A stretch of DNA of 64,000 nucleotides from Penicillus capitatus (GCA_965649825.1 OZ287699.1:1084477-1148476); one strand, 5' to 3'. Shown: positions 6,051-35,406, numbered from the stretch's first letter. Notes: a model not told the origin generated them from the letters alone. Program-made: numbers and translations.

Positions 6051-7117
6051 ATGTTGCGTTTCTCCCGTGCAACGGATGGCGGTGCTATTTTCCGCCGAGA
6101 AGTATCCAGCAATGACACCGTAGCTCCGGCGGGATTTAGCTACTCTTTCTGGAACCTCTTCACCTTGCAGTTCCCTAGTAGGTCCACAGAGACACGCTAT
6201 GGAAGGGAGGCATACTCGACGTTTCTCGAACACGACCTCCTGGCGCATTTCATTGGATGCTTTCCCGGTCCGTTCTTCGTCTATAACCTCGGCAGCGTTC
6301 TACCTCGCTGGTTTACGATACTGTGGCTGCTACTGTCGCTCGTTTTCGCCCCAGCAAACATCTACATCCGAGCATATCACACGTACATCTCCACTTTCGC
6401 TATCCTCTGTGAGTAGTGCATCTATTGTTGTCTGTCATTAGGGAGTTCTATGTGCGGATGCGGATGTCTAGTATCGTCTTCATACGCTTCGTCATACCGT
6501 TCTGTTTCCTGGGCTTCGGAATCTATGATTCGCCACCTTTGGCAAAACTTTCTGCTGTTGTGATGACCATCTGCACCAAGTCTCCCGTGTCGAATATGTT
6601 GTTTTCGTCCATGAATTTGAGATTACTCTTTCATCAGCATATCATTCTTCACACAGTGGCGCTGTTTGTGGCTTATCTCTGGATTCCTGGATTCTGCACC
6701 ACGTGCCTGTCTGAACCGACAGTCCTCGAAAAGTTCAACGATGTCTCGATGGCGTTTCCCTATCCTGCTGTTTCCGTGACGATGTGTGTTGTCTAGATGG
6801 GATACGGCATCGACTGGGTCTTTACAAAAGGCTTGCTCAATAGATCGCCGGATGCAAAGGACTACCCCTGTTGGATGATTTCGGCTCTCGTCATAACTGC
6901 GTTTGGATATATCATTCCAACATTTATTGTTTTTAGTGCAGAAGTGTCATCACGATCAGTGTTTCTCCGAACGAGGATCTCCGAAGAATACCAAGAACCC
7001 CTTGGCAAATTCCGCAGCGATGCTTTGCGCGTTGGGTCCATGGGATGTCTCGCATGTCTCATCGCCACTTGGTTTCTGCTTTCAATGCTGCGGGATACAG
7101 TGGATGACTGGATGTAA
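6051..7117 (+). CDS. Unnamed multi-TM family protein, copy 1 (most divergent), three exons
   Basis: FWNLFTLQF, KSP..., LRLLFHQH, W.PGFCTTC, MGYGIDW, YPCWM, E..SR..FL. Same exon layout as copies 2-7. Start approximate. Confidence 0.75.
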
Positions 7118-7587
7118 TACTGCATAAGTGACGCGCATTTCTTAAGCAAAGGACTCTTGGTGATACAGACGTCCGATCGAGTCTGGATGTCTGTTTGTTT
7201 TTGTTATGAGGAGATGTTATGAGGTATCGCGGATCGAGGAAATTGGAATAACGATCGTCCATTTCCAGTTCCACCTCGCCTCACAAAGACCAATGGTGTG
7301 TGTATGCGTCGTTCGATTTTTTTCCACTCCTCCTAATTGAATCTACGTACCCGCAAAAACACAGATATTTCATTTGTATTGCTGGGACTTCAGTGACAGT
7401 ATTGCTGCTGTTAAGTTTGATGTCTCATCTTCTGGAAATCTGCAGCAACAGGATTTGTATAGCAACGGGGTGTGTACCAGATTTGCGTGTCTTCTGTGGG
7501 AAACAGCATCTCAACGCGTCTGGCGGCCGTCACCCATCGTCCATGCATCGCATTCGGATACGTTTTCCTTTTGCATGAAACGTGGCG

Positions 7588-8627
7588 ATGTGTTTCGTAA
7601 GGGTCAAGAGCAATTTCGCCGCTTACGCCAGCGATAGACAAATAACGAAAACCGTTTCTAAACCTCGGACATTGTGGAGTCCGTTTTCGTTATGTTTCGC
7701 CTCGGCCATGAAGGAAAAACAGTACCGAAGGGCGATGCTTGGCTCCTGGCTCGTCCTCGACGCCGTCGGCTGCTGCTTGGGCGTCCTCTCGACGCCGCTT
7801 CTCTTCATGGCGTATCGCCATGAGTTACCTGCAGTGTTGTACGCAACGTGGTCGTTCTTTTCCTTTGTCCTGGCTCCGCTCGGCATCTACACCAATTTCG
7901 TATACAGGTCAGTCCTGACGGTAGATGCGCGGCTGACGTGATGCCGTTTGCTGCCTAGGAAGAATATGAATCCGGAATCCAGGCTTTGGTACGTGTTGTT
8001 TGTTCGACTGATCATTGGAGCATCCACGATCGGACTGCACAGCCTCGCCACCCAACCCATCTCTTCCATACCTGGACTGCTTCTTCACATACTGACAAAA
8101 TCGCCACTTCTTATCATGGTTATGGCATCATGGATGCATCGTATGGAATTCAGATTCCATGTCTTGGTGCAAAGCGCGGCACTGATTCCGGCTCTCCGCT
8201 GGGTACCGCTATTCTGTGAAACATGCTCGACGGATCTCGCCAATGCACAGAAATTTGAAGAGGTATGAAATCCCGTAGAGCGATCTTGCCCATAAGCATC
8301 GATCTGTTCTCGCAGATGGGTTACGGAATCGACTGGCTGTTGTCCTACACTGTCTTAAACAGAGAACCAGATCCGGCTGTCTATCCTTGCTGGATGATGA
8401 CAGCATTTGTGGTCGTCGTTCTCGGCTATATCCTTCCCTGTTTTTTGATTTTTATGACTGAGATTGCTTCTCGTGCTGCTTTCTTGCAGTCCAGAGTGTC
8501 TCACAAGTTCCACTTTGACATTTTCTCTTATGCAAACAATGCGCACAAATTTGGAGTCTTGGCGGCGCTAGCGTCGATGTTCGCTATGTGGTACACATTA
8601 TCCGTTAGCAGAGATCTTATGTACTAG
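7588..8627 (+). CDS. Unnamed multi-TM family protein, copy 2
   Basis: LWSPFSLCF, HRMEFRFH, LFCETC, MGYGIDW, YPCWMM, EIASRAAFL; three exons. Confidence 0.8.
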
Positions 8628-9180
8628 CCTGCTCTTCCATGTCTCGATCGTATGATTCATGTTTCTCCTGCAATTGTGAGTGTTTAGCAAAACGTTCTGT
8701 CTGGCAATATAAATGTTCCCAATCAACTTGTGAAAAGTCTGCCGTTGGCAAGGTTTTGTGTTCTTTCTGTAATGTATTTCGGCTCGCACATGGTTCAAGA
8801 TGCTGCCGGAACCTAGACAATTCCATTCTCTTTTTGTTTTGGCCCTTGACTCTTCGGAGGACAGCGGATCCATAAAATAACAAACTCGACCGCACTCTGG
8901 TCAGAATGCAAATCTTCATCTCTTTCGGAGATGATGATGATATCTTTGCATTTTAAAAGTTTGCATTGCTTTTCGTGCTGGTATGAGTTCCATAATGACG
9001 GTTCTTTCTGAAATCATGCCATTTGCAAGAAAAGTTAGAGCATGGCGCCGGTTAGCATGTGGCTCTCTACGACGTTTAACGGTTTCGTATCCTCCCTCCC
9101 GCGACCCGATCGATAGATTCCATCTGTCGATCTTAATGCGGTTTCGATTGGTCGTGCGATCCTCGCAGCGTCACTTCGGC

Positions 9181-10212
9181 ATGTGTTGCTCGAATCCTGC
9201 CTTTCATCGCACACACTTTGACGATGAAGCGAAACCGGATAAGTCGAAGAAGGAGATAGCGCACGTATCTTTTTGGAAGCCCTTCTCTCTGAGGTTTCGA
9301 AAGGATGCTCTCGAACGCACTTATCATCTCCAGGTGAGTCCAGGCTGGTACAGGCAGGACGCCGCGTCTTACGGCCTCAGTACAGTTTTCTTGCCCGTAT
9401 TCGTCTATACGATGTGGACAGAGATTCATCCGTGGCACATCGCCATTGTTTCCATTATCAGCCTCTTTGTCGGCCTGCAACTCTGGACCTTTTGGAGAAA
9501 TAGGTCATACAGAGACTTCGAGATTGTCTCCATTCGAGACTCTGCGTGTAGGGCGTTGTTTGTGCGCTACCGTTTTCTGTCGACAGTTTTCGTACGATTG
9601 TTTGTCTTCTTCTTCATCACAAAAGTCTCGAGTGAAATCAAGTTGCCTCACTCTTCGTCCTTCGCTGTTTTGTTGGCCTCTATAATGAAGTCTCCGGCTG
9701 TCCATATGTTCCTAATGTCTTTTCATCACCGTCTGGAATTCAGGTATCACATGCCTGTCCAAACCGCAGTACTTTGCCTGAGTCTTGTCTGGATTCAACC
9801 GTTTTGCCAGACATGCTCGTCTGATCCCTTCATCTCCAAAGAGTTCCAGAAAGTAAGCTCCTCTTCGAAAAGACAAATCTCTCAATGAAGTTCTCTGCAG
9901 TTCGGTCACGGTATCGATTCAATGTTTTCATATACCGTGTTCAACAGAGAGCCAGATCCCACTGTTTATCCGTGTTGGATGATGGCCGTCCTTATTCTTA
10001 TAGTCCTGGGTTTTGTTCTTCCATGCTGGCTCATTTTTGTTGCAGAGGTTGCGGCTCGACGGATGTTCCTACTAAGCAAGACGTCTCAAAAGTTCCGGCA
10101 AAGAATTCTCGAATACTCTGCTGCTGCAATGAGAGTGGCAACGTTAGCGTTTGCGGCTTCCTCTGTAGGAACATGGTTTTTTCTTTCTGCTGTGCGGGAT
10201 CTGTTGTACTAG
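9181..10212 (+). CDS. Unnamed multi-TM family protein, copy 3
   Basis: MCCSNP..FWKPFSLRF, HRLEFRYH, PFCQTC, YPCWMM, EVAARRMFL; three exons. Confidence 0.8.
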
Positions 10213-11103
10213 CTGTCTTGCAGTTCTCTGAAAGACGACAGGTGCAGTCTTTCGAAGCTTTGCTGAGCAGTAGAATGCAGAGTAAGCTGTCTGCCTATCA
10301 ACATGTCCCGTTCTACGTTTATAACTTATCGCACGAGTCCAATCCCACGAGTAGAAGTCTATTTTCGGTGTAAGCCTATAATGTATGCTAAAGTTCAAAG
10401 GTTGGGAGCAGTAATCTATGTCGCAATGGGTATTATGCTTTTCCTAAATGAGCTTTGTGGTGATAGTTCCCACTACCTTTTTTCATAACTAATGGCTCAA
10501 CGGTGCATGTTGTTTGACGTAATGATTTCTTCTCGGTGGCAAAGCATGAATCAAGTCTGGTGTAAATACGATGACGGGATTTTATCTTCTCGTTTGGAAA
10601 CAGTGTTCATGAAGACAACTGAATTTGGGGAAGTCTTACTGAACAGACGTAGTAGGTAGGAACTGTCATGAGTATTGAGTTCATTGATACGAGGTTGATA
10701 CACGTATAGACCTTCGATGTTGATGGTCTAGTACATCTACAGTGGCCCAAGATATCAAACCGTATCGATATTACTGACAGACTATCGACAACCATTGTAC
10801 AGATTGACTTGACGGGGCCCATACAATGATGTTATGATTCGATGATCGTAAGTGTGCGAGTCGTACAGCAATCGTCTGCTAGGTTAGAGTAGTCAGACAG
10901 GCAAAAACTGGAAGCAGGTCAAATACTTATACTCTCTTCCAACCAATGCTGGAAAGAGAATTGTTTACTCTCCTTACCTGTCAAGTGTTCCAAAACACAC
11001 GTAAGAAGTAATGGGGCCTCCTCTCGCTTGTGATGTCTGTGTTTAAGTCTATTGTATGAGCATGGAATAGATTACTGGCACAGGCAAGGTTGTTGCTGTG
11101 ATT

Positions 11104-11265
11104 AGATCAGCCACGGTTCTGCAACAGATGTGAAGATCAGCCACGGTTCTGCAACAGATGTGAAGATCAGCCACGGTTCTGCAACAGATGTGAAGATCAG
11201 CCACGGTTCTGCAACAGATGTGAAGATCAGCCACGGTTCTGCAACAGATGTGAAGATCAACCACG
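11104..11265. repeat. 30-bp minisatellite, five perfect units plus a partial unit
   Basis: AGATCAGCCACGGTTCTGCAACAGATGTGA repeated head-to-tail at 11104, 11134, 11164, 11194 and 11224, then AGATCAACCACG. No spacers. Confidence 0.95.
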
Positions 11266-13354
11266 TTAATAGACCTGTAGAATCAGCAAGGCAAGAGTGT
11301 TTGTTGTGCTCTTATAGCTAGATTTTCAGCTTTTCTGTTCAGCCTTCAAGCTCAGTCATTGTCGGCATCGTTGCAATTAATGTCCATCAGTCAACAATTG
11401 TCTGAATGCTGTCGCCGCCGGGACCCGATGTTTCCAAATCTCTCCCAGTTGTTCTTCATGTTTTTCGGGCCTTCTGTAGCACCAGAACATCGACTTCCCG
11501 CGAAAGTGTCAAACAAGTAGTCGAAGGTTGTTCCAACAACCCAGGAAAACGGAGCACCATACTGTTTGTAGACAAGAGATCTGCTGTCCAGAAGCGATGT
11601 CTTTGATGGTGTAACATGCTTTTGAATGACAGGATGGGTTATGTAGTTTGAGCTACAAGACAGTCCGGCTTCCTTCGTAGCTCTTCTATTACAGTTCAGT
11701 TCGACTGTCTGAATCAGTCAATAATCATACAAAAGAACATCACTGGGAGGGTAGGATAAGAGTTGCATCAAATGGAAAATTAAAGCGCGTAATGCAAGGA
11801 CTGTAAATGACTAAAATAAATCGCAAACACGCCCGACAGAATCTTGAAGGTCTTGGTAGACCCTCGCTTTGGTTCATACTCCCGCAACGTAAACTTATTC
11901 TTCCTCGTGGTGACAACGTCGCGATGCTCGCTCTGATTGCAAAATGGGCAAACACTTATCCAAAACTATTCTTTGCAGAGTCTTGTTCGTCTTCTTTCCT
12001 TCACGAACATAATGACATCGCCTGGCATCTGTAACATAAGCATTTTTTTGCGAAATTCATTCATCGTTATGATGTCCACTCCCCTGAGTTATAAGCTCCG
12101 CGGTTAGTCAAACCTTTGACAGTTGCTCGAAGTTTTTGCACTAGTGCTCGAAACGAGCGATAGACATTCTTCTTGTTATGTGCATGAAAAAGATACACTG
12201 CCGTTTCTAATCGAGAATCGAAGTTTCGATGAGTATCTATTCAAGCCTGGTAAGAGCAAGCTCGATCCACGTACGTTCAATACGTTGCGAAAAACACTGT
12301 TGTGTTAACATTGTCGACGATCATTCTATTCGCTTCGATGTCTTCGTCGACGGAGATCTAACAACAATATTGCTCTATCGTAAGGTTATTGAAGATCCTC
12401 GTTTTTCAAAAAAAGCAAAAGCGAATGGTAATAATCCAAAGTGCAAAGAACGTTACAGGTTGCACAACTTCTAATATCTGCGCGAGTTGTCCATGATTCC
12501 ATTCCGTGAATTTGTTAAACATACAGTGACGACATTAATAGGCTGGAATAAAAGTTGTTGGAATTCAACACACTGCAAATAGGACGCCTTGGGGTTAAAT
12601 GAAAGAAATACATTTATTCTTCCTGTCTTCAATTTTATAAATATTCTCTTATGAAACTTGACGAATTTCGGTGCTGCGACGTCTTTGTTACAATTCCCTT
12701 GGCTATCCAATTGATGCCCAACAAAAAACCGCTCGCCAGGAGTTTGCCAGTCTTTAATTTGATATTTCGGCGCGAAAACACGTTCTCCAGGTTCGTTTCA
12801 CTAAGACATCATCTTGCCCTATCCAAAGCTTCATTCTTGGTTGGTTGAGCCAATACTTTCGAACTTTTCTTGAACCTTGATGCTTCAACGGCGTGGCACA
12901 CTTTCGCCTTAGCCAACGTTTTGTGTTTTTTCACACAAAGTATTTTGGCGCAAAAATGATAGACGAGTAAGGTATTTGTTCATCTCCGTGAAATCTTGTA
13001 CCCTCGAGGTCTTCAAGAAGAGATAAAAAGCATGTTACTATGTAAACACGCGCTCTGTCAGTCTTCCTTATGATAGAGGACGATATTAGTGAATGCAACG
13101 GGCAATAGGTATGGAAAATATGTGATGTTAAGAATCCGATTAACAGAAGAGGCTGTTCCGGTCGGTATTTCTCTAGGAATGTAGCCTGTACCGAGCGTTA
13201 GTACAAAGAAGACCCGTTTTCTCCTGACAGGTACGGGATGGTGATGAGATGGTTCGTTAGAGAAAATACAAGATTCTTTTTTATGCATGTATGAATGAGC
13301 AGCCTAAACTTTCTTTGTGACTAGATATATCTAACAAAGATTCAAATATGTGCG

Positions 13355-14049
13355 TGTCAGTGGACAGCTGTCCACCTTCGTGCAGCTGTCCAAAGAATTG
13401 CTTAAATTCTTACAATTACTGTTCGAACAGTCTTTGTAATCCTTACGCCTTCGTCGTTAACCCGTTGTCCGTTGACAAACACGACATGGTTTCGGAGCGA
13501 CAAAGATTCCGGCGATAGAATCTCGTCATCGAAGACTGAAGACTTTCCAAGACACGTCCGTGGTGACAGCGTTTTACCTACCACCTGCAGTCCGTAGTTC
13601 GTTCCATCGTCCGAGTTGCTGCGTTTCAGTTTCACGCTGCGATAAGCGTACTGTTGCGCATTGTTGTGTTTACGTTTTCTATCTGGGTCACCACGGACGT
13701 GTTGTCGCTGTGAAGTACGGTTCGAATTTCCAGAGTCGGCGCTGAAGTCTCGGAGACGTAAGAGCTACAAAGCTGCGGCGAATGGGCCGCAGAGGGAGAA
13801 GCCTCGTGACGATGGCCCTGGCTCGACTCCTGGCCAGCCTGATGACATCCCGACTGTCGTGAAATATGTTCCGTTCGCATCATTCGGAGTCTGCACAACG
13901 AAAAGGGGGTGGGTACATGTCAGTGGACAGCTGTCCACCTTCGTGCAGCTGTCCAAAGAATTGCTTAAATTCTTACAATTACTGTTCGAACAGTCTTTGT
14001 AATCCTGACGCCTTCGTCGTTAACCTGTTGTCCGTTGACAAACACGACA
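13355..14049 (+). mobile_element. TRIM (terminal-repeat retrotransposon in miniature), 695 bp
   Basis: 132-bp direct repeats at 13355-13486 and 13918-14049 with 2 mismatches and TGTC...GACA termini. Identical 5-bp flanks GTGCG (13350-13354, 14050-14054). PBS-like TGGTTTCGGAGC directly after the 5' LTR. Purine tract GAAAAGGGGGTGGG just before the 3' LTR. Confidence 0.92.
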
Positions 14050-14092
14050 GTGCGTAAGGATTGATATAGATGCACGTCTTGCAATATAGGTC

Positions 14093-14314
14093 CTACTGAC
14101 GATCAACTATCTCAGAATGCACAAGGGATTCTCGGGAAAGTTTCAATTCGGAGCATTCCAACAGATGGTTTCTGTCTTCGATATCACATCCACAGAGTTG
14201 ACAAGAAAGATCATCTCCGGTGTTTTGGATTGTGACGAGCGTGGAATATAGAATAACTTTGAAAATCAAGACAACGAATGTCAAATCGTAAGAGCAGGTT
14301 CGTGTTTGAACCAA
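14093..14314 (-). pseudogene. Possible relic of a non-LTR retrotransposon C-terminal zinc knuckle
   Basis: CQLCGCDIEDRNHLLEC fits the CxxC...ED..HLL.C motif at the end of LINE ORF2. The upstream frame is broken by stops and no RT core is recognised. Confidence 0.35.
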
Positions 14315-15868
14315 TCCTATGAAAAAAGAAAAGTGGGCACTTGCCGTTCCTCCATGCGGTCTCTCTAAAACGTACCGTCAAAGACGCATTCGTTACTCGA
14401 GGCTTAACGCTCGGCGTTGATTTTTAATATCCTGCGTTCTTTGCATAAGCCTCGCTTGACAATCCTTATCTTCGCTCGACGAAGTTCATTTGGTCTCAGT
14501 CGGACTTCAGTCTTCGCCTACCGCATTGAATCCTCTTTCCGTTCGCTTCGCAAAATCTCTCACGTGGAGAAGAAGCGTTCAGAATAAGTGCGCTTAGCTT
14601 ATCAAAATCGCCTTCTAAAATAATTCAACTGCCGATGACATAATGCACGATCTCTTCATAACTATGCACTGTCAAGAAACAAGAACTAGATGCACTAACC
14701 CCTATATTACAGTGCGGCTCTGTCCTAATAGTGGATGGCCCTATCTTGATGAAAGCCAAGGTAGAAGCTTCAGATTACGCAAAGAATGGCTTAATATGCC
14801 GGAGAATGATTGGGCGTTTATACGACGATGGACGTGACGTAACGTTTTCTTCCCCACAAAAACGGATTTCATTCAATAAAAGATGTCTTTTTCGTTCGCG
14901 CATACCTCTACAAAAACACAACCGTCCATCGCGCCACCTGTCGCCGAGTCCTGGCTCTCCGGCGTCCGCAAAGCATCGATGGACGATGCCGAATACGAGC
15001 AGCGATGGCGATCTGCATCGAACAGAGTCCGTTCTTTTCCGCATCTTGTCGTGCTGTTGGCGGCGCCACCGAAACGGCGCCAGAGTGCCACGGTTTCTCG
15101 GATTGAACAACATCGACGTCGATTGCCGCGAAGCGGTTGCCGCGACAGGCGATCCTGTCGATCGCGCGATCCATCGAAGACAAGATTCAACTTCGTGTTC
15201 AGAAACAGTCAAAATCCCTTTTTGCTTCCGCAATCGGCAAAGAACGAACGACTCTTCGTGCTGCGCCGTCCATCGCAGTCGACAAACACTGGGGACAGGT
15301 CTGTCTTCTATCAACCACAACCGTTTTCCAGACAGGACACGAGGTTATAGGGTTCATGATCGACGGACGGATTGATTGATCCAACCTTGAACGTTGTCCA
15401 GCCCCCTCGATACTTGAGCGAAAAACAACGTCTTTACGTCTGACTTTCTCTTCGAAAACTGTTGACACCGAAATCGACAATCCCGACTGAACCACCGACC
15501 CAGTTGAGCGGCAACGGAATGATTCCTTTTGACGTCTATCGTGTCTCCCTCGAATCCCCTCTCCAGATCACGTGCGCAAAACAACGGCTAAACTACTACT
15601 GGGCGAAGAAGTGCATCGTCCGTCGTATGTACGTCGGGGCGACATTGAATGAGATATATCCGTCAGCGTAAGGTACAGGACGACAAACTGCTGCCATCGC
15701 CAAGCTCGCCAGTACAACTCGTACACGTTTGCAGATGCAGTTCGTCATTTGTCATCGACGGCAGCGACCAATACGTCAGGTGAGTATACAGAAAAACGCA
15801 GGCCCGGCAAACGCAATGCTGCCTCATCGGCGAGACCCTCTCGACGCCGCAGAACGAAATGAAGGGAA

Positions 15869-16495
15869 CTAAGAGAAGCGGCGCGAGATGCCTCCGTAGA
15901 TCGAGATCATGGCGCCCGCTATGTATATGTACACGTAGGCAGGCAGCGTTTTGAGCTGCTCAGCCGAGAACATGTCCTTCATGGGCATCAACGGCGGCAG
16001 GTGATCCCCCTCGTGGGCGTCTTCCTGGGGCGTCAGCAGCTGCCTGTCTCGGTGAATGACGAGGGGCTTTGCGTCCGAGACATCCAGCAGAGGTCGCTCG
16101 GCGGCAAAGCGCACTCCATCGTTCTCGATGTGCTCCTGCTTGCACCCGTACATCGCGTAGAACCTCATTTCGCGGTGCTCCTGACACATGGCGCACGCAT
16201 GGCAGCAGCAATGCACACAACAGTCGTTGCATGGCACCGGCGGCAGACTGAACTTGCGTCTCAGGTGCTCGCGACGCGTCATTCCGAGCAGACAGGGAAC
16301 GCCCGGAATGCAGCAGGTCACCGTGTAGATGGCGCAGTCGGCGCAACACGAGCACGCGTCTTGACCGAGCAGGTACTCCCCGATGCGGGCGTAGCTGATG
16401 CACGGACACCAGCACGACAAGCAGCAGCTGCTTGCATCGCGCGAACAGTCAAACAGAGAGCCGCTGCGCCACTGGCCGAAAAGTGCCGAGGACAT
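15869..16495 (-). CDS. PLAC8 (Cys-rich, PCR/FW2.2-like) family protein, left-arm copy
   Basis: WRSGSLFDC...CCLSCWCPCISYARIGE...REHLRRKFSL....CNDCCVHCCCHACAMCQEHREM is the PLAC8 signature. ATG at 16495. Confidence 0.88.
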   Translation of the reverse strand: MSSALFGQWRSGSLFDCSRDASSCCLSCWCPCISYARIGEYLLGQDACSCCADCAIYTVTCCIPGVPCLLGMTRREHLRRKFSLPPVPCNDCCVHCCCHACAMCQEHREMRFYAMYGCKQEHIENDGVRFAAERPLLDVSDAKPLVIHRDRQLLTPQEDAHEGDHLPPLMPMKDMFSAEQLKTLPAYVYIYIAGAMISIYGGISRRFS

Positions 16496-16709
16496 CGCCG
16501 CGAACAAGCGCTTCTATCCCGCGCGTTAAGCGAAATGTTCGTCCATCTGATCCGCTCGCGCATTTCGCCGGTCACCGTTGACGCCGAGAGGCATTTCGCG
16601 GCTGTCGTGGACCGACAGGCTCGCCGGCAGATCGAAATCGATTCGCCTTCCGCCGTGACCGGCCCGAACCGATCGACCGTCCCGTCGCTGCATTCCGCGC
16701 GCTGCCCGT

Positions 16710-17552
16710 ATGTCGGAGACGGAGCTGCAGACGACGTTCTGGAGAGACGACGTGTGGCTCTCCCAGACGGCGCTGACGGCGGAGACCGCCCTGCGCGACT
16801 ACTTCTCGCTGTCGACGTTCTACGATCCGCAGTGCAACAACGAGACGATCAAGACGCTCGACCTCCCGTTCTCCGAGCTGCAGTGCGTCCGCCCGCGTCC
16901 TCCCCGTGCCGAAGGCTCTGTTCCCGCAGCACGCTCGCCCCCGGCGTGGAGTACGTGCTGGCGGCGGCGTCCGAGCCGGACCTCTTCGTCATCGAGAAGC
17001 AGCACAGGAGCGAGAGCCAGGAGACAACGCCTCTGGCCTACTACTACATCCTCTCCGGGACGGTCTACCAGGCGCCGGACCTCCACTCGGCCATCCGGGC
17101 AAAGTTGGGACGGCCCTCGGATGGAGATCGGCATCTCGGTGTTCGTCGTGAAGGGCCAAGAGGTGCCAGTTTCTGCTGGAGAAGAGCTTCCGGAGCTTCT
17201 CCAAGGCGTTCGATCCGCGCACGGCCCCCTCAAAGGAGTGAGAGACGGACGCCTCTTCGGGAAGAGGGTCGGATGACGGCGGCGCGTTTGCAGGTCCGAG
17301 GAGGCGAAGAGGAAGTTCGAGAGCCAGCAGGAGTGGGAGAAGATGAAGACGGGGACGGACGTCGTCAACGCCGTGCTCGCCAGGTGAGCGTGCCCGGCCT
17401 CGCCGTCCCTAATCCGCTGCTCTCTCTGCCTCAGCTACCCGACGGTGCCCGCCTCCGAGGCGCGCACGGCCCAGTCCCTCGCTCCTTCGATGAGCCAGTC
17501 CACGGCGACGGAGGGCGTGGCGAGGAGGCAGGGCTGGAAGGGCAGTCCGTGA
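16710..17552 (+). CDS. MED6: Mediator subunit 6, left-arm copy, five exons
   Basis: FWRDDVWL...ALRDYFSLSTFYDPQCNNE / GVEYVL....PDLFVIEKQ.R....TPLAYYYILSGTVYQAPDL. Short GT-AG introns join the frames to a TGA at 17550-17552. Confidence 0.9.
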
Positions 17553-17668
17553 GGCGCCGTCGAGGGCAGGTGCGAACGCCGACCGACGTCGCTTTCGCGA
17601 GACGGTGCGCGCGCCGTCGGACGTTGTCTTGAAGGCACCGCTGACGTTTCTGTAAGTCCCGGCGCGTC

Positions 17669-19646
17669 ATGCAGACCGTCTGCGAGAGCTCGTCCCCGGC
17701 GCGTCCGAGAGGCGACGTCTTCGCCGGCCTGTCTCCGTGCTCCCTCCTGGAAGGCCAGCGCGAGTCCCTGAACGCCTGCTACGCGGCCCTCCTGTCCGAG
17801 AGGGCAGCCGCCGAAACGCAGGTTCCCGACGCCTCTCCCTCCACCCTCTCACGCGCCCCGCAGAAGGAGAACGAGAAGCTCTGGGCGATCTTCGACGCGG
17901 CCCTGGAGACGGAGCACGTCGAGTTCCTGCACCGCTACGTGGAAGGTCCCGCTATGCCGGCCGGCCGGGCTCCGCGACAACGACGCGCTGTGGCTGCGTA
18001 GATGTCTGCTTCTCGCCGGATCTCCTGCCCTTCGGCCCCGACGCCTACCTGCACAGCACGCACGTCGTTCTGGACTGGTGTCAGAAGTTCCACGGCGATG
18101 CGGAGATTCAGATCCTGGAGGGCAGGCGGGACGCTCTGTCGCGCCTCCCTCGGAAGTGCGAGAGCGTGAAGGGCGTGCTCGGCCGCTGTCTGGACCGCCG
18201 AGAGGGGGATCCGGAGCGCAGACGGAAGAGGTCCGTCGTGGCCCGGCGGCTCCTGGAGACGACCGAGGGCGTCAGGCTGGCGGCGCTCGTGGCGTGCTGG
18301 CTGTGCCGTCTCGGCGCGTCCCCCGCGCCCAGGCGAGAGCGGATGGCCTCGCTGACTCCGGACGCGTACCTCTGCTCCCAGGACCTGCCTCCCATGTGGC
18401 TGGAGCACTACCCCTTTCGGGACGAGAACAGGATGATGGAGATCGTGTTCCTGAACAAGGACGACCTCGGCAGCACGCGGCTGAGGCACTGCAAGCTCGC
18501 CATGCTGGCGTTCTACCTGATGCACTCCGGCCGGGTCGACTCCCTGGAGTTCCTGGCCGAGCGGTTCGGCGTCGACCGTCCGAGGGCCAGGCTCTGGCAG
18601 GGCGTCTTCGCGGTGGACCTCTGTCTTCTGGAGAACGACTTCGGGACGGACGGCGTGATACAGTTCGCCGCCCAGTCGCTGAGGGACTCCGTCCACGAGC
18701 TCGGCGCGATGCTGCCGTTCGACACGATGATGAAGCTCGTGACGCTGGGATGCGGCGCCGACGTCAGGAGCATGTTCGTCCGGCACCTGTCCGCCTACCT
18801 CGACGCCCACTCGTGCCCCGTCTCCGTCGCCCGCCAGGGCGTGCTGTTCTGCCTGGTGTCGCGCGACGTCCCCGCCGGGCTGATGGTGGTGCGGAAGACG
18901 CTCCGGAAGCTGCACGCGACGACCGACGGGATGCTGCTGCTGCACCACCTCTACGACCAGTGCCTGGGGAACTCGCTGCTGGAGGATCTGGTGATGCAGG
19001 ACCTGACGGGAATGGAGGAGGCGGTCTTCGTCGACTGGGCCGGAGCGAAGAGGGACGATCCCGAGTGCAGCCTGTACCTGGCGCTCTACTTCTTCAGGCA
19101 GTCCAGACCGGAAACCGCCAAGGCGCTCTACCTCCTGAGCGCCGAGACGATGCGGCAGTCGACGCACCAGGCACCCCGCCACCCTCTCCTCCCGCCGTGA
19201 CGCGGCCTTCTGTTCTGCAGGACCTGTGGCGACAGCTCGGCGAGGGACTCGGGGGCACTTCCGTCACCGCCTCGGGCGAGGTCGACGGCAGGAGGCGTGC
19301 CGCCGCCGAGGAGGAGGCCGTCGAAAGCGGCGACTCCGTGGACGAAGAGACGGAGGGCGACGGAGAGGTCGCTGCTTTGGTCGGCGCCTGCCGCTCGGCG
19401 ATGCCGTTTCACCTCCAGCAGCTCGTCGGAGAATTCGATCGGTCGACGCCTCACCTGATGTCCTCGTACTCGGAGCTCATGAACTCCAAGAACTTCTGTC
19501 CGCTGCTCCCGGCAGAGGAGGAGGACCAGCCTGTCGCAGAGACGCATTCGTCGATGCAGGACGACAGTTCCGTGGAGATGGACATAGAGAGTGAGTCGGA
19601 TGATGATGCGGTTTTCTACGATGCAATGGAAACGCTTGAAGAGTGA
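17669..19646 (+). CDS. HOS1/ELYS-like nuclear-pore protein, left-arm copy, four exons
   Basis: KLWAIFDAALE...RYVEDVC...VVLDWCQK and YPFRD..MMEIVFL...KLAMLAFYL...FLAERFGV resemble the plant HOS1/ELYS region as I recall it. The last intron (19171-19220) is GC-AG. Acidic tail ends ETLEE*. Confidence 0.65.
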
Positions 19647-20868
19647 CATGTCTTTCATCAAAACTCCCGCCAGCACGAGAAGCGTGAGACGCATAAACTG
19701 TTTCTTAGCACGGTTTTTTAAGAGGACGATCTCCATTATGTCCATTCTGAAAGGCAATCTAGGACGACAGCATTTTCTACTTCGATGCTGCAGTTTTCTT
19801 TGCAAAGAAAGGAAACGAAAGTGAAAAACCGGGTCTTATGTCACAGATGCAGAAATGGTCGTGCCGGGTTGGAAGGATCCATTGTTCTGATGCTCTCCCC
19901 CCGTGCTTTTGTCAACAAATCTATTCTGCTGGGGCATGGCTCATGACAACCTCTGCTCTGGTGGACGCCATGTGCACCGGAAAGATAGCTTGGTCATCCA
20001 GTAGAGTTGACAGGAGTGATTGAATTACAAACGTGCTGTTGTTGCCTTTTTAGACTCGTAGTCGACGGCAACTGACTTCTTGGCGGCACAAAAGGATCAC
20101 ACTCCCAGGGTATTTGTATCTGTCTCTGTCGCTGACTGTCTGATGGGTGGAGTTCCTTTGACAGACGCCTTTAAACAGCGCGCATTTTTCGCGCGACTAA
20201 ATTACAGACCATGGCTGATTTTTACGTCTGACCTCATTGAACGATGCCATCCCTGTCCGATTGTTTTTCTCGTGCACTATCCTGTTCGCAGATTCGCAAA
20301 GAGTTTACGTTTACACAGCAAGTTGGGTTACCTAGGTCTATGTGGTTCTCTCTGGTTCCAATTAGGGGTATTTCGTTTCCGTACGAAATCTGCCAATCGA
20401 ATGTCGATGCATCTAAGACTGGCTCCGTGCTGTCTTAACATTAAGAAGGACACCTGAAGGCATACTCTTTTAGTCTGTACATACGGTCGGCAGTTTGACC
20501 TCCGTCCTGACACAGGCTAACGTCGCAATCGATAGAGTGAGGCTGTACAAACGGCAGTTTCCACCAATTGTATAGTTGGCATGGATAGGAAACCCCTCTG
20601 ACGCGGTTAAACACCGCAGGGATTCTCCTTCGTCGTCGACTCTCACGATGAGTCTCTGTGAACTCGACGCGTGTCTTCCGAAAATCTGTGCGGCAAGATC
20701 TTCTTTCGTATCGGACGCGATATCTGTCGTTATCGTCCGTTCGTCGTCCGTCTCTGGTTGAAGACCGCATTTCACCCGCGCGCAGGTGGGTTGTCAGATC
20801 TCTAACGGTAACATCCACCTTTTGGACGTCATCTAATGTCCACGTATTCTTGTTATCGTCTAATTCTC

Positions 20869-21912
20869 ATGCATTTTGCTTGTCATGAGTCGCGCAAACA
20901 CCTTCCGCCATCAGGCGACTTCAAGGACGACGAGACCGAGCCGGAAGAGGACTACGCTTTCTGGAGGCCATTTTCGCTGAGATATGAAAGGCTTGCTACC
21001 GAGAAAGACTTTCATTCCAGCGTGATTCCGGGATGGCACATGCGCGACGTCGTGGCGTATGCACTGAGTATTCCATTCGCACCCATTTTCTTCAAAGCGC
21101 TTGGACCCGAGATTCCATCGTGGCACGTTGCCGTCGTTGCCTTTATTTCTGGATTCTTTGCACCGCTCCAAGTGTTCGGCTTCATCAAACAGAGGTATGA
21201 ACCAAAAGTCTCTTTCCTGGATAAAAAGGATAAACGTCCTGTATAGGGTGCGGTATGCTCAGTTTCGTTTTGCATCCGTCGTTGTCGTGCGATGTGGCCT
21301 GGTGGTCTTCTTTGCTGCCATCTGCAGCTACTTTCACGCACCACATCCAACAAACACAGCTCTCTTGATGGCATTCTTGATGAAAACGCCAGTTCTTCCG
21401 CTCATCTTCATGTCATTCGGTCACCGGGTGGAATTCAGATACCATGTGCCAGTGCAAACCGCTGCCCTGTTATTGAGTCTGATTTGGGTGCCACTCTTCT
21501 GCCGAACATGCTCATCCGACCCGGAGATCTTTGAGGAAATCCAAAAGGCGAGGCTCCGCTAAAAGATAGATCCAACGTCGTGATTGACGACTGTGTGTAG
21601 TTTGGCTTTGATATCGATTCCGCCTTTACTCGTACCATACTGAACAAAGAACCTGATCCCACAGTTTACCCCTGTTGGATGGTTATGACATTTGCTCTCA
21701 TCGTCACGGGTTTTATCGTTCCTTGCTTTTTAGTTTTTGTTACCGAAGTCGACCTCCGTAAAAAATTTCTCCTCTCCAGAATGTCTCAAAAATTCCACCT
21801 TGGTATTCATGGATATGCGCTGCATGCAATAAAAGTTGCGGTCACGGCATTTGCAGCCACCGTTTTAGGAACATGGTTCTGTCTGTCTTCTGCAAGAGAT
21901 CTCTTTTATTAG
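20869..21912 (+). CDS. Unnamed multi-TM family protein, copy 4
   Basis: FWRPFSLRY, HRVEFRYH, LFCRTC, YPCWM, EVDLRKKFL; three exons. An alternative ATG lies at 20836. Confidence 0.8.
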
Positions 21913-23403
21913 TCTGTCTCACAGCGCAGAATTCTACTGCAACGCTTGGGATCTTGCTTTTCGTTTGGCAATGCAAATTAACGATTTCCTGGCTTCTTAA
22001 TCGGGATGTATATGCATCTACATGTTCTTTAGAGTGCAACTCCTTTATCATCGATGTTTTCTGATCGATGGACGACTGAAACTATTGCCTTTGAGAATAG
22101 ACTGCCTGTCCGATTTGACATAGCATTCTTAATGCCCGCCGAGTAGTGTGGCGAGAACAGTCGCTTCGTCCAGAACGGCTATCGAAGCGTACCAATGCGT
22201 CTGTGTGTACTCAATTCGTTCTCTCTCGACTGGCAATCATTTGATTCAAAGAATCAGAAGAGAAACATTTTACCTGAATCTGTATTAAAACATATCCAGT
22301 TAGAATGCGAATTGACGAAGATCAGTTGGAATCGGAATAAGGAAGATTCGATCATCATCTACTGAAGATGAAATAGAACAATCCTCGGTGGGACATATCT
22401 CGACGTCTGGAACACATCTCAAACGGCGGGCATTTGGATGTTTTCATAGTTAAATCTCTTTCGGTTAGTGTGAAGAAGATCTTTGCAGATCAATCCCGTC
22501 GATTTCAAATCGTCAACGTTGGTGTTCTAAATGAGAAGGGCAAGTGGTGAAAAGGCTTATCGACCCAGTGTCGTAGCTCAGCGCCACGATGGAAGACATT
22601 ATGTTTGTTATGTTAATGTTGTGAAGATAGTGTAATCTCCTTGGTGGATGACTTTCGCAAACGTGCCGCTCCGAGCATCGTGAGAACGCTCGTCCTTGTG
22701 TATAGACATCAGATGATCGTCGCTGTGGCACTCTTTTCTGAAAGGGCACGATTTACAGCATGCTTATACTCTCTGCTAATAGTGTGAGTGGAGATGTCTA
22801 TCGTCATTGTGACGAAAGAATAGCACGCCAAGATCGAGGGAAGTTGTGATCGCTTGCGAGAAACGGCTCTCCTTGACGATAACATCACCTTGATACTCAA
22901 TCCGTTATCTGCAAGTTCCGTTTTCACAATGACATCGCTATGGCTGCCTTCGCATTTCGGTGGATTCGGAAAGAAAGATGCACAACATCATCCTTTTGAG
23001 TTTCTTAGAATAGCAGTTCGAGGCACCCGCGACTTAGAGATAAAGGTTTTTCGTCTCAGATTGTCGACACAGTGGTTGTTGTTCTTTAATAGCCAATACG
23101 GCAGCGAGCACGAGACATAGCTGCACCCTATTTCTCGTTGTGTAACTTTGGACGTCAAAACGTGCCTGCGTCTCAAGAGCCTCTTCTCCTTAAACCATTG
23201 CCGACGTTATGTTTTGTATGCGCAGACAGATGGTTCTGCAGATAGATTCCCACGGGACTGGCGGTTTGCAACATTGCTGCGTAACTTCTGAAGACACCGA
23301 GCCGGTCATTTGAACTATTCTCTTCCCTACAGCACTCCTGTGCATTGTTGAACGAAAACCTCTCCACGAAGAGATTCCTCGCGACTGCTCATCCTATATG
23401 AGC

Positions 23404-24416
23404 ATGGAGAAGGAATTGGCAAAGTTAGTTTGTTCGTCACCCTTCTCAATAGGAGAGGTTATGCTGAAAGGACTATCTACCGGAACTCGAGACACGTCTG
23501 GTACTTTCAGGACATCATGGCGTACCTTGTCAGTATTCTTTTCCTTCCGATTTTCTTCCGCAACTTCGAGCTCGAGAACGATTCATGGCACGTGATGTTG
23601 ATCGTTTTGGAAACAATGCTCATCGGGCCACTCCAGATACACTTCTGTTTCACGGACAGGTTCGCCACGCACACTTGAGGAGAATGCCTATCGAGGGGAT
23701 TTATGCAGAGCGACGTCGAGACGCCATCGATCTGTGCTAATAGCTTCCGTACGAATGGCGATGGCTTTCTTTATCGCACTATTGTCTATCAACAGTGAAG
23801 TTCAGAGACCCACACTCTCTGTCGTTCTTATGACACTCTTGTTCAAATCACCGGTCACACATCTGATGTTCACAGCACTCCATCGCCGACTTGAATTCCG
23901 ATGCCATATTCTCATCCATGCTACGATGCTCTTGTTTTCGGCACTGTACTGGATTCCGCCTTTCTGTCGAAACTGTTCCAAAGACTCAGCCGTTCGAGAG
24001 ATATTCCAACAAGTACTATCCCTATTGCAAAGTGTGCGTGCTCATGATGGAATTCTCTCTAGATTGGCTGCGGAATCGATTTGATGTTTTCCGTTGTGCT
24101 CCCTAATGAAATGCCGGCTGTGCGAGTTTATCCGTGTTGGATGATATCATCTCTAGTTTTCATCGTTTTAGGTTTGATTGTGCCATCGTTGTTAGTCTTT
24201 GTCACCGAGATTTTAGCTCGAAGGGCCTTTCTCCTATCCACACTGTCGCACAGATTTCATCGCGACATCTTTTATTTTTCAAATGAGGCAATAAAGATTA
24301 CCCTCTTGGCTTCTTTGTCAGGCATTTCGGCATCCTGGCTCTGTTTGCTGATTGCAAGGGACTCATTTCACGCACAGACGTCGACTTTCACCTCATGTCA
24401 GCAAATTGACCACTGA
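23404..24416 (+). pseudogene. Unnamed multi-TM family, copy 5, with an apparent frameshift in exon 1
   Basis: The SPFSI motif (~23440) is in a different frame from the ERTIYR..W.FQD that follows. Exons 2 and 3 are intact (RRLEFRCH, PFCRNC, IGCGID, YPCWM, EILARRAFL). Confidence 0.6.
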
Positions 24417-25544
24417 ATCAAGTGCTGGGAATGCACAGTGCGCATTCCGGGGGTATATCTGTGAGAGTATCTGACAATGAAAAGCTATCTATCGTCTGTG
24501 CACTGCATCAACCTTTGCTGATAGATGTCGGTAGCCTCTGTTGGCCCTGCATGGTCGAGAACGATTGGTTTGTATGGTGTCACTGTTTGCGCGATCTCTT
24601 ATTCTGAGCAAGTTTTTCATAATGGTGTGTGCTGTTTTTCTTCAAAAATATGATCTCGGACGATGCGACTAGATTCGTGAGAATGTTTACAGCAGTCAAT
24701 GCCACTGAAGTCTTTGATGGGAAGCATCATGTCAAGACCATGATGGTCTGTACAATGTAAGAAACTGCGTGTGTGGTCATTTGAGAAATGGATCTCGAAA
24801 ATTACCGCCAGGATTTGGAAGAAAGACTCGAGTGAGTGAGTGATCCTTTTCGAGTTGACTGTCGTCGAGAATCTATTCAGACATCGCGAGTTGGACATTT
24901 TGGGCATCATCTAAAGCATAATCAACAAACCTGAACCGTTATGCATTAGGTCGGAGGCGTCAAGAACGGCATGAGATAATCTTAGATTCCGTTCCAATAG
25001 AACCTTGAACGAAAGCGACTCGTAAATTTCTGTCGGTCGGTCCTTACATCGCTCAATCTATTTCAGAAGTCGTCTGTGCACTGGTTACTTCATCCTGTCT
25101 CTGCTCGTGCGAAACGTTGACGCGTCCTCTTCAGAGAGTCGTACTCATGGCTTTCGGTCTTCACTTACGGAAACCGATTCAGGTCGCTATCGAAGTCTAT
25201 GATCGTCACGCGGCTCCGTTTCGAAATCAAACAGAGAACATAGGCGTCGTTTTGCGGTCGAGAAATCAGTTAACCGATGGGTCGGCACTAGCGGGGGTGC
25301 CGTCCAACAGGTAACCACTTCCCAAGTCAACTATTGGCGCAGAAGTTGCAACACAATCAGCGCGTAGAGAGTGCTGAGCTTTGTGCTCACTACCGTTCTT
25401 TTCAAGGCCGCGGTATTTCGATGAAGGCGCCCGCTTCACGAATAGGTCCTTCCTAACCGTCCTGCCCCTTCTGAACCCCGTCTTTGCCTGTACATTAGCT
25501 TGTACCTTTGACGGGCGTATTACTTTGCGACACGAAAGGTTTTT

Positions 25545-26584
25545 ATGTGTTGTTCAAAACCAGCCTGTCACCGAATCATTTTCGATGACGAACCCAAACC
25601 GGACAGCGACGCGGAGAATCCAACGCGCCTCTCGTTTTGGAAACCATTCTCTTTGAAGTTCGAAAAGGACATTACGGAAGAGACTTTTCATTACCGCACG
25701 AGTCAAACTTGGCAAATACGCGACCTCATAGCTTGCTGTCTCACTATCCTGCATATCCGCGCTTCCCTCCTCGAGATTGCACCGAAGATTCAAGCGTGGT
25801 ATACAATCGTTATACTCTCCATACTCTCCTGTTTTGCATCGCTTCATATCTGGGTGAACTGCAAGCGCAGGTATGTACAACACAATCTGTGATGCGCTTT
25901 CTCACTGAGATGTTGTTCAGAGACAAGTATGGACGCAATTTCTTCTGGTTGATAAGCTTCATAGGAGTCGGCATGTCTTGTTCTTTCATGGCTTCGTCTA
26001 GGTCCTCTGAAGCTCCTTACCCGACATATTCTGCTCTTTTTGTCGCCTACATTATAAAATCTCCTGCTATTTCTCTTTTCTTTATGGCGCTCAGTCTCCG
26101 CTTGGAGTTTAGATATCACTTTCCCGTTCAAACCATAGCCGTCCTCCTGGGAAGCGTCTGGATTCCACCCTTCTGTCAAAAGTGCTCAGCCCGTCCAGAT
26201 GTCATGAACATGTTTCAGCAAGTACGTTCAGCAAAAAATGCAAAATCAATTGCTCCATCGAATGTCACTTAGATTGGCCATGGGATTGATTGGCTCTTTT
26301 CTTTCTTGTTTTTCAGAGAAGAGCCACATCGCGTGGTCTATCCCTGTTGGATGATGACTAGTGTCGTGATTGCCGTCACGGGTTTCATCATCCCATGCTT
26401 CTTGGTTTTCATCGCAGAGGTATCTGCACGTTCAGTTTTTCTGCAGTCCAGAATGTCACACCGATTCCACTCTGGCATTCTCCAATATACGAAAGAAGCA
26501 ATGAGAGTGGGTATTTTAGCATTCGTCTCGGCTATTCTGGCAGTATGGGTGTGTTTCTCTGTGACGAGAGACCTCTTGTACTGA
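25545..26584 (+). CDS. Unnamed multi-TM family protein, copy 6
   Basis: MCCSKP..FWKPFSLKF, LRLEFRYH, PFCQKC, YPCWMM, EVSARSVFL; three exons. Confidence 0.8.
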
Positions 26585-27623
26585 TACGCGTCACAGTCTG
26601 ACGCAGTTACCTGAACCAAGAGCTGGCGTCGTGGATAATAATGGAGTCGACTCTGCGTGATATCAGGAATTACCTTGAAACTCCAACGATCCAATCGAAG
26701 TCTCTTTAGTAGTTACTAGGTCTGGGATAAATCTACAAAAGATGTATGTATGATTGACAGCAAACATTAGTGGAATGCGGCTTTGCAGGGTAGTTGTATG
26801 GTTTCCTTGTCGAAGATTTAGTACATTCTCGTTATTCTTCAATTTCATTGGAAGGGTGGGCGAAACAAAATGTCATCTGTCAAGGAATGAAGTTTTACTA
26901 ATGGTATGATACTCGATTCACTACGAATGATGAATTGATCCGGGTTTTGCCCCACGAAGCTCTGCAGCTGCTCGTTAGCGCCATCTGATTTTACGGGTTA
27001 GACACTGAAGCACATAGAGTAGGGTAACAACTGTTTAAACAACACATCCAGAGCGTTTCCCTTTTTCAGTCATAATCAGACCTACATCACGGTTCCATAG
27101 CTGGATGGTATTTTAGCAGCTGTAGACGGACTTGTGGAGCAATGATCTTATCTATAGTCTATAATAATAATTCATAAACCAGTGTATCAAAATCCAAAGG
27201 ATGACGCGTTTGTTACAAACACATCGGCACAATCGCTCGAAGAGAAGGTCGAAAGAAGTAAGAATGTTTTTTCGCAGCGATCTAGACTATCCGTCTGAGG
27301 ATCCTGGTTTGCTCATGTCTTTCATCAACCATCTTCTCGGCGTCTGGATTTCGTCATCGCTGCTTCGCATCGAGGGCGAGATTATGAAAAGAGTCGAATC
27401 GCGAAGAGCAGGACGTCAGAGAGCAGACATATGTTCCTGGCAGACATTGACGAACTCTTTCTCCTTCAGACGAGAGAATCTGATGATCGAAATGCTGTTG
27501 TACGACAAAGCAGATGTGTAGCGGCTCACATCATTGTCGCCCAGGAGTTCGATTTATCTCCTTCGACTTCGATCCATTTCGACAGTCATTCGTTTGCTTC
27601 TCAGCACATGCCGTCAACTGACG

Positions 27624-28665
27624 ATGCATTCCCAGAAACTGAAGAGCGATTGTGCGCTTTTTGACAAGGAATTTGTGCCAGACGTAGACAGTGAGCTTCA
27701 GGAAGATTTGGGCTTCTGGAAACCGTTCTCGTTGAGATTCGAAAGAGACGTAGTTGAGAATGCGTTCTACCGTAGCGTCAGCGATTCGTGGCACGTTCAA
27801 GACACCGTGGCGCACAGTCTCAGCATCCTATTCGTACCTGCGTTCTTTAGAGCGCTGGGACCGGACATTCCTTGGTGGCACGTTTTCATCATTATCTTTA
27901 TATCGCTCTTCTTCGCACCGCTGCAGCTCTACACTTACTTCACCGACAGGCCCGTATTCTCGTCATTCATTTAATACCCACTTTTAGGTGTTTCGCATGT
28001 AGACGACGGTATGAGAGGTATCGCTGGCTGTCTACAATATTCACACGATTGGGTTCGTATTATGCTCTTTCTTACTTCTGCAGTTATTTCAAAGCTCCAA
28101 GTCCGACGTATTTTATGCTTATGCTGGCCCTCATGGTAAAATCTCCACTTGTCCATCTGGTCATCATGTCAGTCCATCACCGCTTGGAATTCAGATATCA
28201 CGTTCCAGTCCAGATCGCAGCGTTCTTACTTGGAGCTACATGGATACCGCCATTCTGCCGCAGCTGCGCGGCCCAACCAGCAATTCTCACAAAATTCGAA
28301 GAAGTGCGCTTGCTCCTCACTGAACACGCTTCTGCTCATTAAATGCATTACAGATGGGGCATGCCATCGATTGGTCAATTTCTTATGCCGTTTTGAACAG
28401 ACCGCCAGATCCGGAGATTTATCCGTGTTGGATGGTGACCGCTTTCATTTTCACAGTTACTGGCATGATCATACCGACTGCATTGATTTTCATCACCGAG
28501 GCAGCGACACGCAAGACATTTCTGGAGAACAGAGTGTCACCGTTGTTACACCGAGAGGTTTACAAATACACCAATGAAGCAATAAACGTTGCCAATCTGG
28601 CTGCCATTACAGCTGTGATGGGCACGTGGTTTTTGGTGTCCGCGTTGCGAGATTACGTTCACTGA
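27624..28665 (+). CDS. Unnamed multi-TM family protein, copy 7
   Basis: FWKPFSLRF, HRLEFRYH, PFCRSC, MGHAIDW, YPCWM, EAATRKTFL; three exons. Confidence 0.8.
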
Positions 28666-35290: not shown

Positions 35291-35406
35291 GACGCGCCGG
35301 GACTTACAGAAACGTCAGCGGTGCCTTCAAGACAACGTCCGACGGCGCGCGCACCGTCTCGCGAAAGCGACGTCGGTCGGCGTTCGCACCTGCCCTCGAC
35401 GGCGCC

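Follow-up and report, generated by a model that had tools for sequence, protein, structure and literature searches.

The 64,000-nucleotide stretch of the Penicillus capitatus genome analysed here (GCA_965649825.1 OZ287699.1:1084477-1148476, hereafter the window) contains seven tandem genes, c1 to c7, which encode members of an uncharacterised and unnamed family of integral membrane proteins of ~310 amino acids (aa). That this family has its centre in the siphonous green algae (Bryopsidales) is well supported by the searches described below, and its confidently predicted fold, with seven transmembrane (TM) helices, has no structural neighbour in the PDB. We propose, tentatively and with somewhat less than an even chance of being right, that the members of the family are stand-alone sensor modules that resemble the membrane anchors of class III adenylyl cyclases.

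By motif scan as well as by tblastn, the window has exactly seven copies of the gene, every one on the + strand, and the spliced gene models agree with the original prediction, made from the sequence alone, of seven co-oriented three-exon genes with introns at the same positions. Intron 1 follows the second base of a codon, intron 2 falls between codons, and their alignment positions are identical in all seven copies. The limits that had been given for the array, 6051-28665, coincide exactly with the c1 start and the c7 stop. The description of a seven-copy array stands as regards copy number and strand, but the array is not contiguous: it consists of two blocks, c1-c3 (6051-10212) and c4-c7 (20836-28665), which are separated by 10.6 kb of sequence unrelated to the family (10213-20835), and while six of the seven copies are intact, the fifth, c5, is interrupted by a frame break close to its 5' end. 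The first block comprises c1 (6051-7117; exons 6051-6382, 6442-6742 and 6797-7117; 317 aa), which is the most divergent copy, c2 (7588-8627; exons 7588-7907, 7959-8262 and 8316-8627; 311 aa), which has GT-AG introns of 51 and 53 nt, and c3 (9181-10212; exons 9181-9503, 9552-9852 and 9901-10212; 311 aa). The second block comprises c4 (20836-21912; exons 20836-21194, 21247-21547 and 21601-21912; 323 aa if translated from 20836), c5 (23398-24416; in-frame part 23448-23659, 23709-24012 and 24063-24416; 289 aa), c6 (25545-26584; exons 25545-25870, 25921-26221 and 26273-26584; 312 aa) and c7 (27624-28665; exons 27624-27949, 28003-28303 and 28354-28665; 312 aa), the last of which serves as the reference for residue numbering and for the structure model. 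The proteins (311-323 aa) are 27-46% identical in pairwise comparisons. The introns are 48-59 nt long, exon 2 measures 301 nt except in c2 and c5, where it measures 304 nt, and exon 3 measures 312 nt in five of the seven copies. Of the 14 introns, c4 intron 2 (donor at 21548) and c7 intron 1 (donor at 27950) are GC-AG introns, and the other twelve have GT donors. In c1, the donor at 6382 (GTACAT) and the acceptor at 6442 form the sole pair that restores the frame at the shared position of intron 1; alternatives of 29 or 33 nt were dropped in favour of this 59 nt intron. Intron 1 of c3 (48 nt) is by chance stop-free and in frame, and the raw open reading frame (ORF) 8983-9888 runs through it.

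A second metagenome contig (ERZ26696514; L002), traced through an exon fragment that shares 82% identity with c7, is collinear with window positions 18666-30934 at ~77% nucleotide identity and carries the orthologues of c4, c5, c6 and c7 in unchanged order. The orthologue pairs are 73-81% identical at the amino acid level, well above any paralogue pair, and the duplications are therefore older than the split of the two species; that the seven copies are old paralogues generated by tandem duplication at the DNA level is well supported. The ratio of nonsynonymous to synonymous substitution rates (dN/dS) of the c4-c7 orthologues is 0.21-0.36 by NG86 and 0.28-0.53 by YN00 (c6, with 78% identity, has a value of 0.21); by exon, it is 0.35, 0.18 and 0.28 for exons 1, 2 and 3, respectively. 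The introns are 63-85% identical between the two species. These comparisons of coding sequence indicate that c4-c7 are under purifying selection of moderate strength, and the per-exon values give no coarse sign of diversifying selection between the window and L002. The earlier characterisation of the family as fast-diverging calls for qualification in that the paralogues are old and the orthologues are constrained. Splice sites are conserved in L002, and so is the use of GC as the donor of c7 intron 1. The donor of c6 intron 1 is GT in the window and GC in the related species (GC donors at L002 8323 and 10438). Because the L002 orthologue of c4 has GTG at the position of the first ATG and keeps the second methionine, c4 more likely starts at Met12 (20869), which would yield a protein of 312 aa.

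In c5 the frame changes right after the PFS motif (~23440), which leaves exon 1 without a clean ORF: the frame that contains the ATG at 23398 and the PFS motif differs from that read from 23448 onward. The break is common to the window (23398-23460) and the L002 orthologue (5860-5930), which has an additional TAA in the downstream frame. Since the 265 aligned codons after the break are free of stops in both species, with a dN/dS of 0.36, the body of c5 is, judging from the alignment, maintained; its C-terminal tail is variable. We rejected an extra intron that would rescue the frame, as 3n+2 nt are needed and there is no spare sequence from PFS to WHVQD. A conserved AAAG|GAC directly after the break could be the acceptor for an upstream exon of c5. 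Alternatively, the break may be dealt with by frameshifting or by a non-AUG start.

The family extends well beyond the window. An exhaustive search of 1.84 billion representative sequences with a hidden Markov model (HMM) of the seven copies retrieved 179 relatives at E<=1e-3, 112 of them at E<=1e-10. The E values reach down to 7e-92 for sequences of other genomes, and chance is therefore excluded for the family. The 179 relatives are clusters at 50% identity, and ~87 of them are full length (270-430 aa); 30 were looked up individually and 90 make up the aligned family set used below. Twenty of the 30 are named, 17 from Bryopsis sp. KO-2023, two from Ostreobium quekettii and one, a distant one, from Myrmecia bisecta, so that every named relative is green algal, and all 20 are annotated as hypothetical or unnamed proteins; the remainder come from unnamed metagenome or SRA contigs. 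No member carries a functional name, and the family is as nameless as it had been said to be. The Bryopsis proteins GMH39640.1, GMH39681.1 and GMH43550.1 and the Ostreobium protein CAD7695546.1 are true members (E 1e-16 to 1e-41), which share the length and the conserved residues of the window copies but are only 15-25% identical to them and have neither been named nor assigned a domain or a function. Several Bryopsis sp. KO-2023 members lie close together on shared contigs. Introns, which the window copies have, are absent from the Ostreobium gene models and from two members arranged in tandem (76-1002 and 1376-2320) on a 2.7 kb contig (JGI 3300008030, Ga0099821_1051862), so that not every member of the family has the two short introns. 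Another intronless contig, L004, showed no poly(A) tail. A search of JGI metagenomes for related loci yielded only two short contigs.

Pfam hmmscan gave no relevant match for six single copies, the 90 members or two consensus sequences, apart from a sub-threshold match of a consensus to OPT (17.4 bits against a cut-off of 25.8). A word-indexed protein search returned nothing with c7 and only three proteins with the 90-sequence alignment; the word index is too coarse for this family, for which the exhaustive HMM search succeeded. The family is also hidden from ordinary searches because a prokaryotic gene caller split the eukaryotic genes into exon fragments. Public protein collections hold single exons as separate 'proteins' (P0004, P0016, P0097 and P0152), and a 498 aa single-exon ORF of the window is present verbatim in a 1.58 Mb contig of the ENA metagenome assembly ERZ25074695, whose genes were called prokaryote-style.

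AlphaFold2 supplied with the 90 sequences yielded a model of c7 with a pLDDT of 91.5 and a pTM of 0.87, which has nine helices and seven TM spans, as the original prediction had counted them; with seven sequences the pLDDT was 65.7, and the Foldseek matches of that model are meaningless. In the better model, a long helix (42-81) combines a cytosolic segment with TM1 and is followed by TM2 and TM3; TM4 is broken in the middle of the membrane at K155-S-P157 (residues 154-158); TM5 is kinked at W189-x-P (187-190); TM5 and TM6 are joined by a 38 aa outer loop that has a helix of its own (201-223); TM6 extends as a cytosolic helix to residue 267, which carries E...R..F; and TM7 spans 272-311, with a TM6-TM7 spacing of 24 residues. 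The proteins stop 5-10 residues past TM7, and their N-terminal cytosolic amphipathic helix carries L.F.....E. Since the mean numbers of K and R in the 90 sequences (3.1, 1.4 and 4.4 per inner loop; 0.3, 0.3, 2.8, over 43 aa, and 0.3 per outer one) place the N-terminus and loops 2-3, 4-5 and 6-7 inside, the predicted topology is N-in/C-out. Several copies begin with MCC or MC, such as MCCSNPA in c3 (9181-9195), MCCSKPA in c6 (25545-25559) and MCFVRV in c2 (7588-7593); such a start may be a signal for N-terminal S-acylation, as would suit an N-terminus that is cytosolic and tethered to the membrane. Foldseek, which is weak on helical bundles, found no PDB neighbour of the better model (best E 0.32 and TM-score <=0.33 in the top 50) and no match among viral models; G protein-coupled receptors (GPCRs) and insect odorant and gustatory receptor (OR/GR) channels came up nominally only. 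An internal 3+3 duplication was rejected, the hhalign comparison of the N-terminal and C-terminal halves giving a probability of 1.6% and a score of 14.3.

The residues invariant in all seven copies are, in c7 numbering, E45, D60, K155, P157, R169, F172, H175, W189, F193, C194, C197, G211, I214, D215, P227, YPCWM (232-236), G246, P250, F255, E258, R262, F265, L266, S271, A285, W301, R308 and D309. Several of the elements earlier listed as invariant are only nearly so: HRLEFRYH is MNLRLLFHQH in c1, KSP is KTP in c4, and G.GIDW varies. In the family at large, L37, F39, E45, R116, C234, E258 and R262 are present in 82-88 of the 90 members (L37, F39 and E45 in 82-84), and D60, F172, H175, C194, G246, P250, F265 and W301 in 66-79. 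The family-wide conserved residues L37, F39, E45, D60, R116, F172, H175, E258, R262 and F265 lie at the cytosolic face; G246 and P250 are in TM6 and W301 is in TM7. The three conserved cysteines noticed earlier between TM5 and TM6 are C194, C197 and C234, found in all seven copies, of which C194, at the outer end of TM5, and C234, at that of TM6, probably form a disulfide that staples the outer loop. C194 is present in 75 of the 90 members. Among the seven copies, the half of the protein that includes TM4-TM7 and the outer loop is the best conserved, and TM1-TM3 are poorly conserved.

The original prediction had pointed out that the beginning of these proteins and the motif after the sixth helix recall the membrane anchor of class III adenylyl cyclases, a resemblance that holds in part, weakly but reproducibly. 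When the 90-sequence profile was run with hmmsearch against all PDB sequences, only one chain scored below E=1, and this was adenylyl cyclase 5 (AC5; 8sl3) with an E value of 0.009. The motif that precedes TM1 in the family matches AC5 twice, as KFPSDKLERLYQRYF before the first membrane domain and as LTFREPDLEKKYSKQV before the second, and helices 1-4 of the family align with AC5 residues 220-375. In hhalign, the 90-sequence family alignment matched an alignment of AC5/6 N-terminal fragments, all annotated as PF16214, with a probability of 83% (P 9e-6, score 43.8, 105 collinear columns), and the family without the window sequences did so with a probability of 81% and a score of 43.1; two reversed alignments and 12 block-shuffled cyclase alignments that served as controls gave 0.3-4% and scores of 15.6-23.8. 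A relaxed hhalign comparison stays collinear and places the LpFRxH loop of the family on the invariant LLPVRMR loop of the cyclases, between TM4 and TM5, with low per-column confidence. Class III cyclase anchors (AC_N, PF16214; AC5 8sl3, AC9) and the family have in common a cytosolic helix with (L/F).F....LE..(F/Y) right before TM1 and then six helices, of which TM2 leads into a basic, aromatic loop, as well as a loop of the L-P-x-R type between TM4 and TM5 and E...R..F where TM6 exits to the cytosol. In mammalian cyclase isoforms, an invariant region precedes TM1 (PMC9552081). The family differs from the cyclase anchors in having neither transducer element, catalytic domain nor second membrane half, and in possessing an extra seventh helix, which puts the C-terminus outside, as well as the 38 aa outer loop with its probable cysteine staple.

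A number of observations weigh against this kinship. The cyclase alignment represents AC5/6 only, and AC8, AC9 and mycobacterial Cya gave no match in the PDB search in which AC5 appeared. Taken alone, neither the motif before TM1 (2.6%, score 18.5) nor the membrane part (6%, score 24.3) gives a significant hhalign match, and the seven window copies alone reach 0.7% and a score of 19.8, in the same register; a PDB profile search with these seven copies likewise returned nothing relevant. The motif and the membrane part, each low, align in the same register, and the signal is therefore additive and collinear. The E...R..F after TM6 aligns with EVSQRQAF of AC5, but this segment by itself scores below zero. 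No AC_N (PF16214) match was obtained by hmmscan even at E<=10 for six copies, the 90 members or two consensus sequences, and no cyclase membrane domain appeared in the Foldseek top 50 of the better model; a match to AC9 (TM-score 0.28, E 1.9) came from the poor first model only. The cyclase-transducer element, which comprises 19 aa with SxL/MP or NxLP at its centre and follows the exit of TM6 (PMC9552081), has no counterpart in the seven copies, where no SxLP or NxLP centre is found, and no cyclase catalytic domain is present in the copies or the 90 relatives, as had been predicted. Seven helices with one long outer loop set the family apart from the short-looped anchors with six helices, and the strong conservation of TM4-TM7 and the outer loop would also suit a pore or a catalytic site. 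A literature search for AC_N-only proteins yielded nothing useful. On balance, and from sequence comparison, we consider the odds of true homology to the cyclase membrane domain to be about even.

The sensor reading would work as follows. The first six helices, together with the four cytosolic-face motifs, would be a stand-alone derivative of the hexahelical module of class III cyclases, and in the family a seventh helix stands in the place of the transducer element and the catalytic domain. By analogy with the role of lipid or ligand receptor that has been argued for the cyclase membrane anchors (PMC11606603, PMC4821796, PMC9552081), this module would bind something in the membrane or at its outer part. 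The charged cytosolic cluster of E45, D60, R116, H175, E258 and R262 would be the output surface, which either would be rearranged upon binding or would be read by a partner protein, and each paralogue would owe its specificity to TM1-TM3, which are poorly conserved. A precedent for varied outputs of such a module is provided by the bacterial quorum-sensing receptors CqsS and LqsS, whose ligand-binding module of six TM helices signals through its cytosolic exit and can stand in for a cyclase anchor (PMC4821796); unlike the family, CqsS and LqsS are fused to histidine kinase domains. It is conceivable, though rather improbable, that siphonous green algae hold a large repertoire of free-standing receptor modules of the cyclase hexahelical type, which respond to ligands in the membrane or outside the cell and act in trans; such modules might, for example, use their membrane helices to associate with single-anchor class III cyclases or other effectors. 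The cyclase 'anchor' would then be an autonomous and portable receptor domain with an evolutionary history of its own.

The main rival to the sensor reading is that the proteins are channels or transporters with the broken TM4 at their centre: a site for substrate or ions would be made up of the half-helices of TM4 at K/R-S/T-P together with TM5, kinked at W-x-P, and the paralogues would form homo- or hetero-oligomers that differ in their properties. This possibility, which we regard as unlikely, draws on the breaks at 154-158 and 187-190 in the high-confidence model, on the polar residue in the middle of the membrane (K, R, N or Q in 67 of the 90 members, with S or T next to it in 79), on the conservation of the TM4-TM7 block and on exon 2, which encodes TM3-TM5 and has the lowest dN/dS of the three exons, but the residues conserved across the family lie at the cytosolic face and not along a path through the membrane, no channel or transporter matches in fold, and there is no match to a Pfam transporter family other than the sub-threshold one of a consensus to OPT. 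The N-in/C-out topology with seven helices is in common with the insect OR/GR channels, which like the family form tandem and highly diverged repertoires; their motifs are different, and no significant similarity was found, since Gr43a ranks first in Foldseek nominally only (E 0.32, TM-score 0.16) and OR5-Orco has a TM-score of 0.10. That the proteins are true GPCRs or chemoreceptors of the seven-transmembrane ion channel (7TMIC) superfamily is accordingly very improbable in spite of the seven helices, the tandem expansion, the strong divergence and the insect Gr43a and various GPCRs that nominally lead the Foldseek ranking: all such matches have E>=0.3 and TM-scores <=0.22, the GPCR arrangement (N-out, C-in) is excluded by the N-in topology, the C-terminal helix ends with W...S..RD and not with the TM7 motif of gustatory receptors, and Pfam gives no 7tm match.

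It is also possible, if distinctly improbable, that the family consists of membrane enzymes, which would either modify lipids by means of E45, D60, R116, H175, E258 and R262 or carry out thiol-redox chemistry by means of FCxxC and C234. The residues invariant across the family are charged or histidine and cluster on one face of the membrane, and the CxxC lies at the membrane boundary beside the amphipathic outer helix, an arrangement that we take to be loosely reminiscent of VKOR and DsbB. The second cysteine of the CxxC, C197, is found in only 42 of the 90 members, however, and is replaced by W in 19, so that a structural C194-C234 disulfide is more likely than a redox pair; a pair of the VKOR/DsbB type likewise finds no Pfam or PDB match. 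No His-box or other catalytic signature and no Pfam or PDB enzyme match were found for the family, and seven diverged paralogues in one array would be unusual for a housekeeping enzyme. Finally, the frame break near the 5' end of c5 and its variable C-terminal tail could be taken as signs that the copies are decaying, non-functional duplicates whose ORFs persist by chance or through recent duplication. This is scarcely credible, given that six copies are intact, that their splice sites are canonical and conserved and that orthologues are 73-81% identical in amino acids with dN/dS of 0.2-0.5, while their introns are just 63-85% identical and the paralogues 27-46%; even for c5, a rough estimate is that several stops would be expected in each lineage if the 265 stop-free codons were neutral at a dS of ~0.35.

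The window is eukaryotic nuclear DNA. Its other scanned ORFs are housekeeping genes, namely those for RPL26, which is nearest to plant ribosomal uL24, a mitochondrial-type L5, alanyl-tRNA synthetase, a SNARE, a patatin-like lipase, PLAC8 and Med6; an Rfam scan of the window gave no match. Around the array there is a 4.7 kb inverted repeat, whose left arm (14915-19633) lies in the interruption between c3 and c4 and whose right arm (33326-38040) lies beyond c7, c4-c7 being situated in the 13.7 kb loop that separates the arms. The arms are 99-100% complementary (99% identical, with 29 mismatches in 4391 nt), and each holds PLAC8, Med6 and a 487 aa ORF. The GC content of the arms is 64-66%, with 85% at third codon positions of the 487 aa ORF, against ~43-52% in the rest of the region, a value that is within the range of Bryopsidales genomes (10.1101/2023.11.22.568388). 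The stretch orthologous to the repeat arm in the related species has a GC content of 55% only, a pattern that could reflect gene conversion between the arms with a bias towards GC. Downstream of the shared block, positions 13432-20462 of L002 are 7 kb of sequence unlike the window, where 30934-33325 and then the right arm are found in their place; the inverted repeat may be specific to the species of the window, or there may be an insertion in L002. A 30 nt tandem repeat of 5.4 units with 99% identity (11104-11265), which is open in several frames, lies between c3 and the inverted repeat. Two direct repeats of 137 nt (13350-13486 and 13913-14049), 97% identical and 563 nt apart, each overlap a short cysteine-rich ORF (SCPPSCSCPKNCLNSYNYCSNSLCNP).

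What the large membrane domains of adenylyl cyclases do is an unsettled question of long standing (PMC12414865, PMC11606603). If the family is related to these domains, it would be a natural case in which a related module occurs without a catalytic domain and in dozens of diverged copies, and it would thus offer an independent handle on the role of the module. Even if the link to the cyclases fails, what remains is a sizeable unannotated family of 179 clusters at 50% identity with a predicted fold of seven TM helices. Both RNA interference and a genome exist for Bryopsis (PMC12961179; 10.1101/2023.11.22.568388), and the family is therefore open to experimental testing in the giant single-celled algae in which it is concentrated and whose membrane signalling is almost unexplored.

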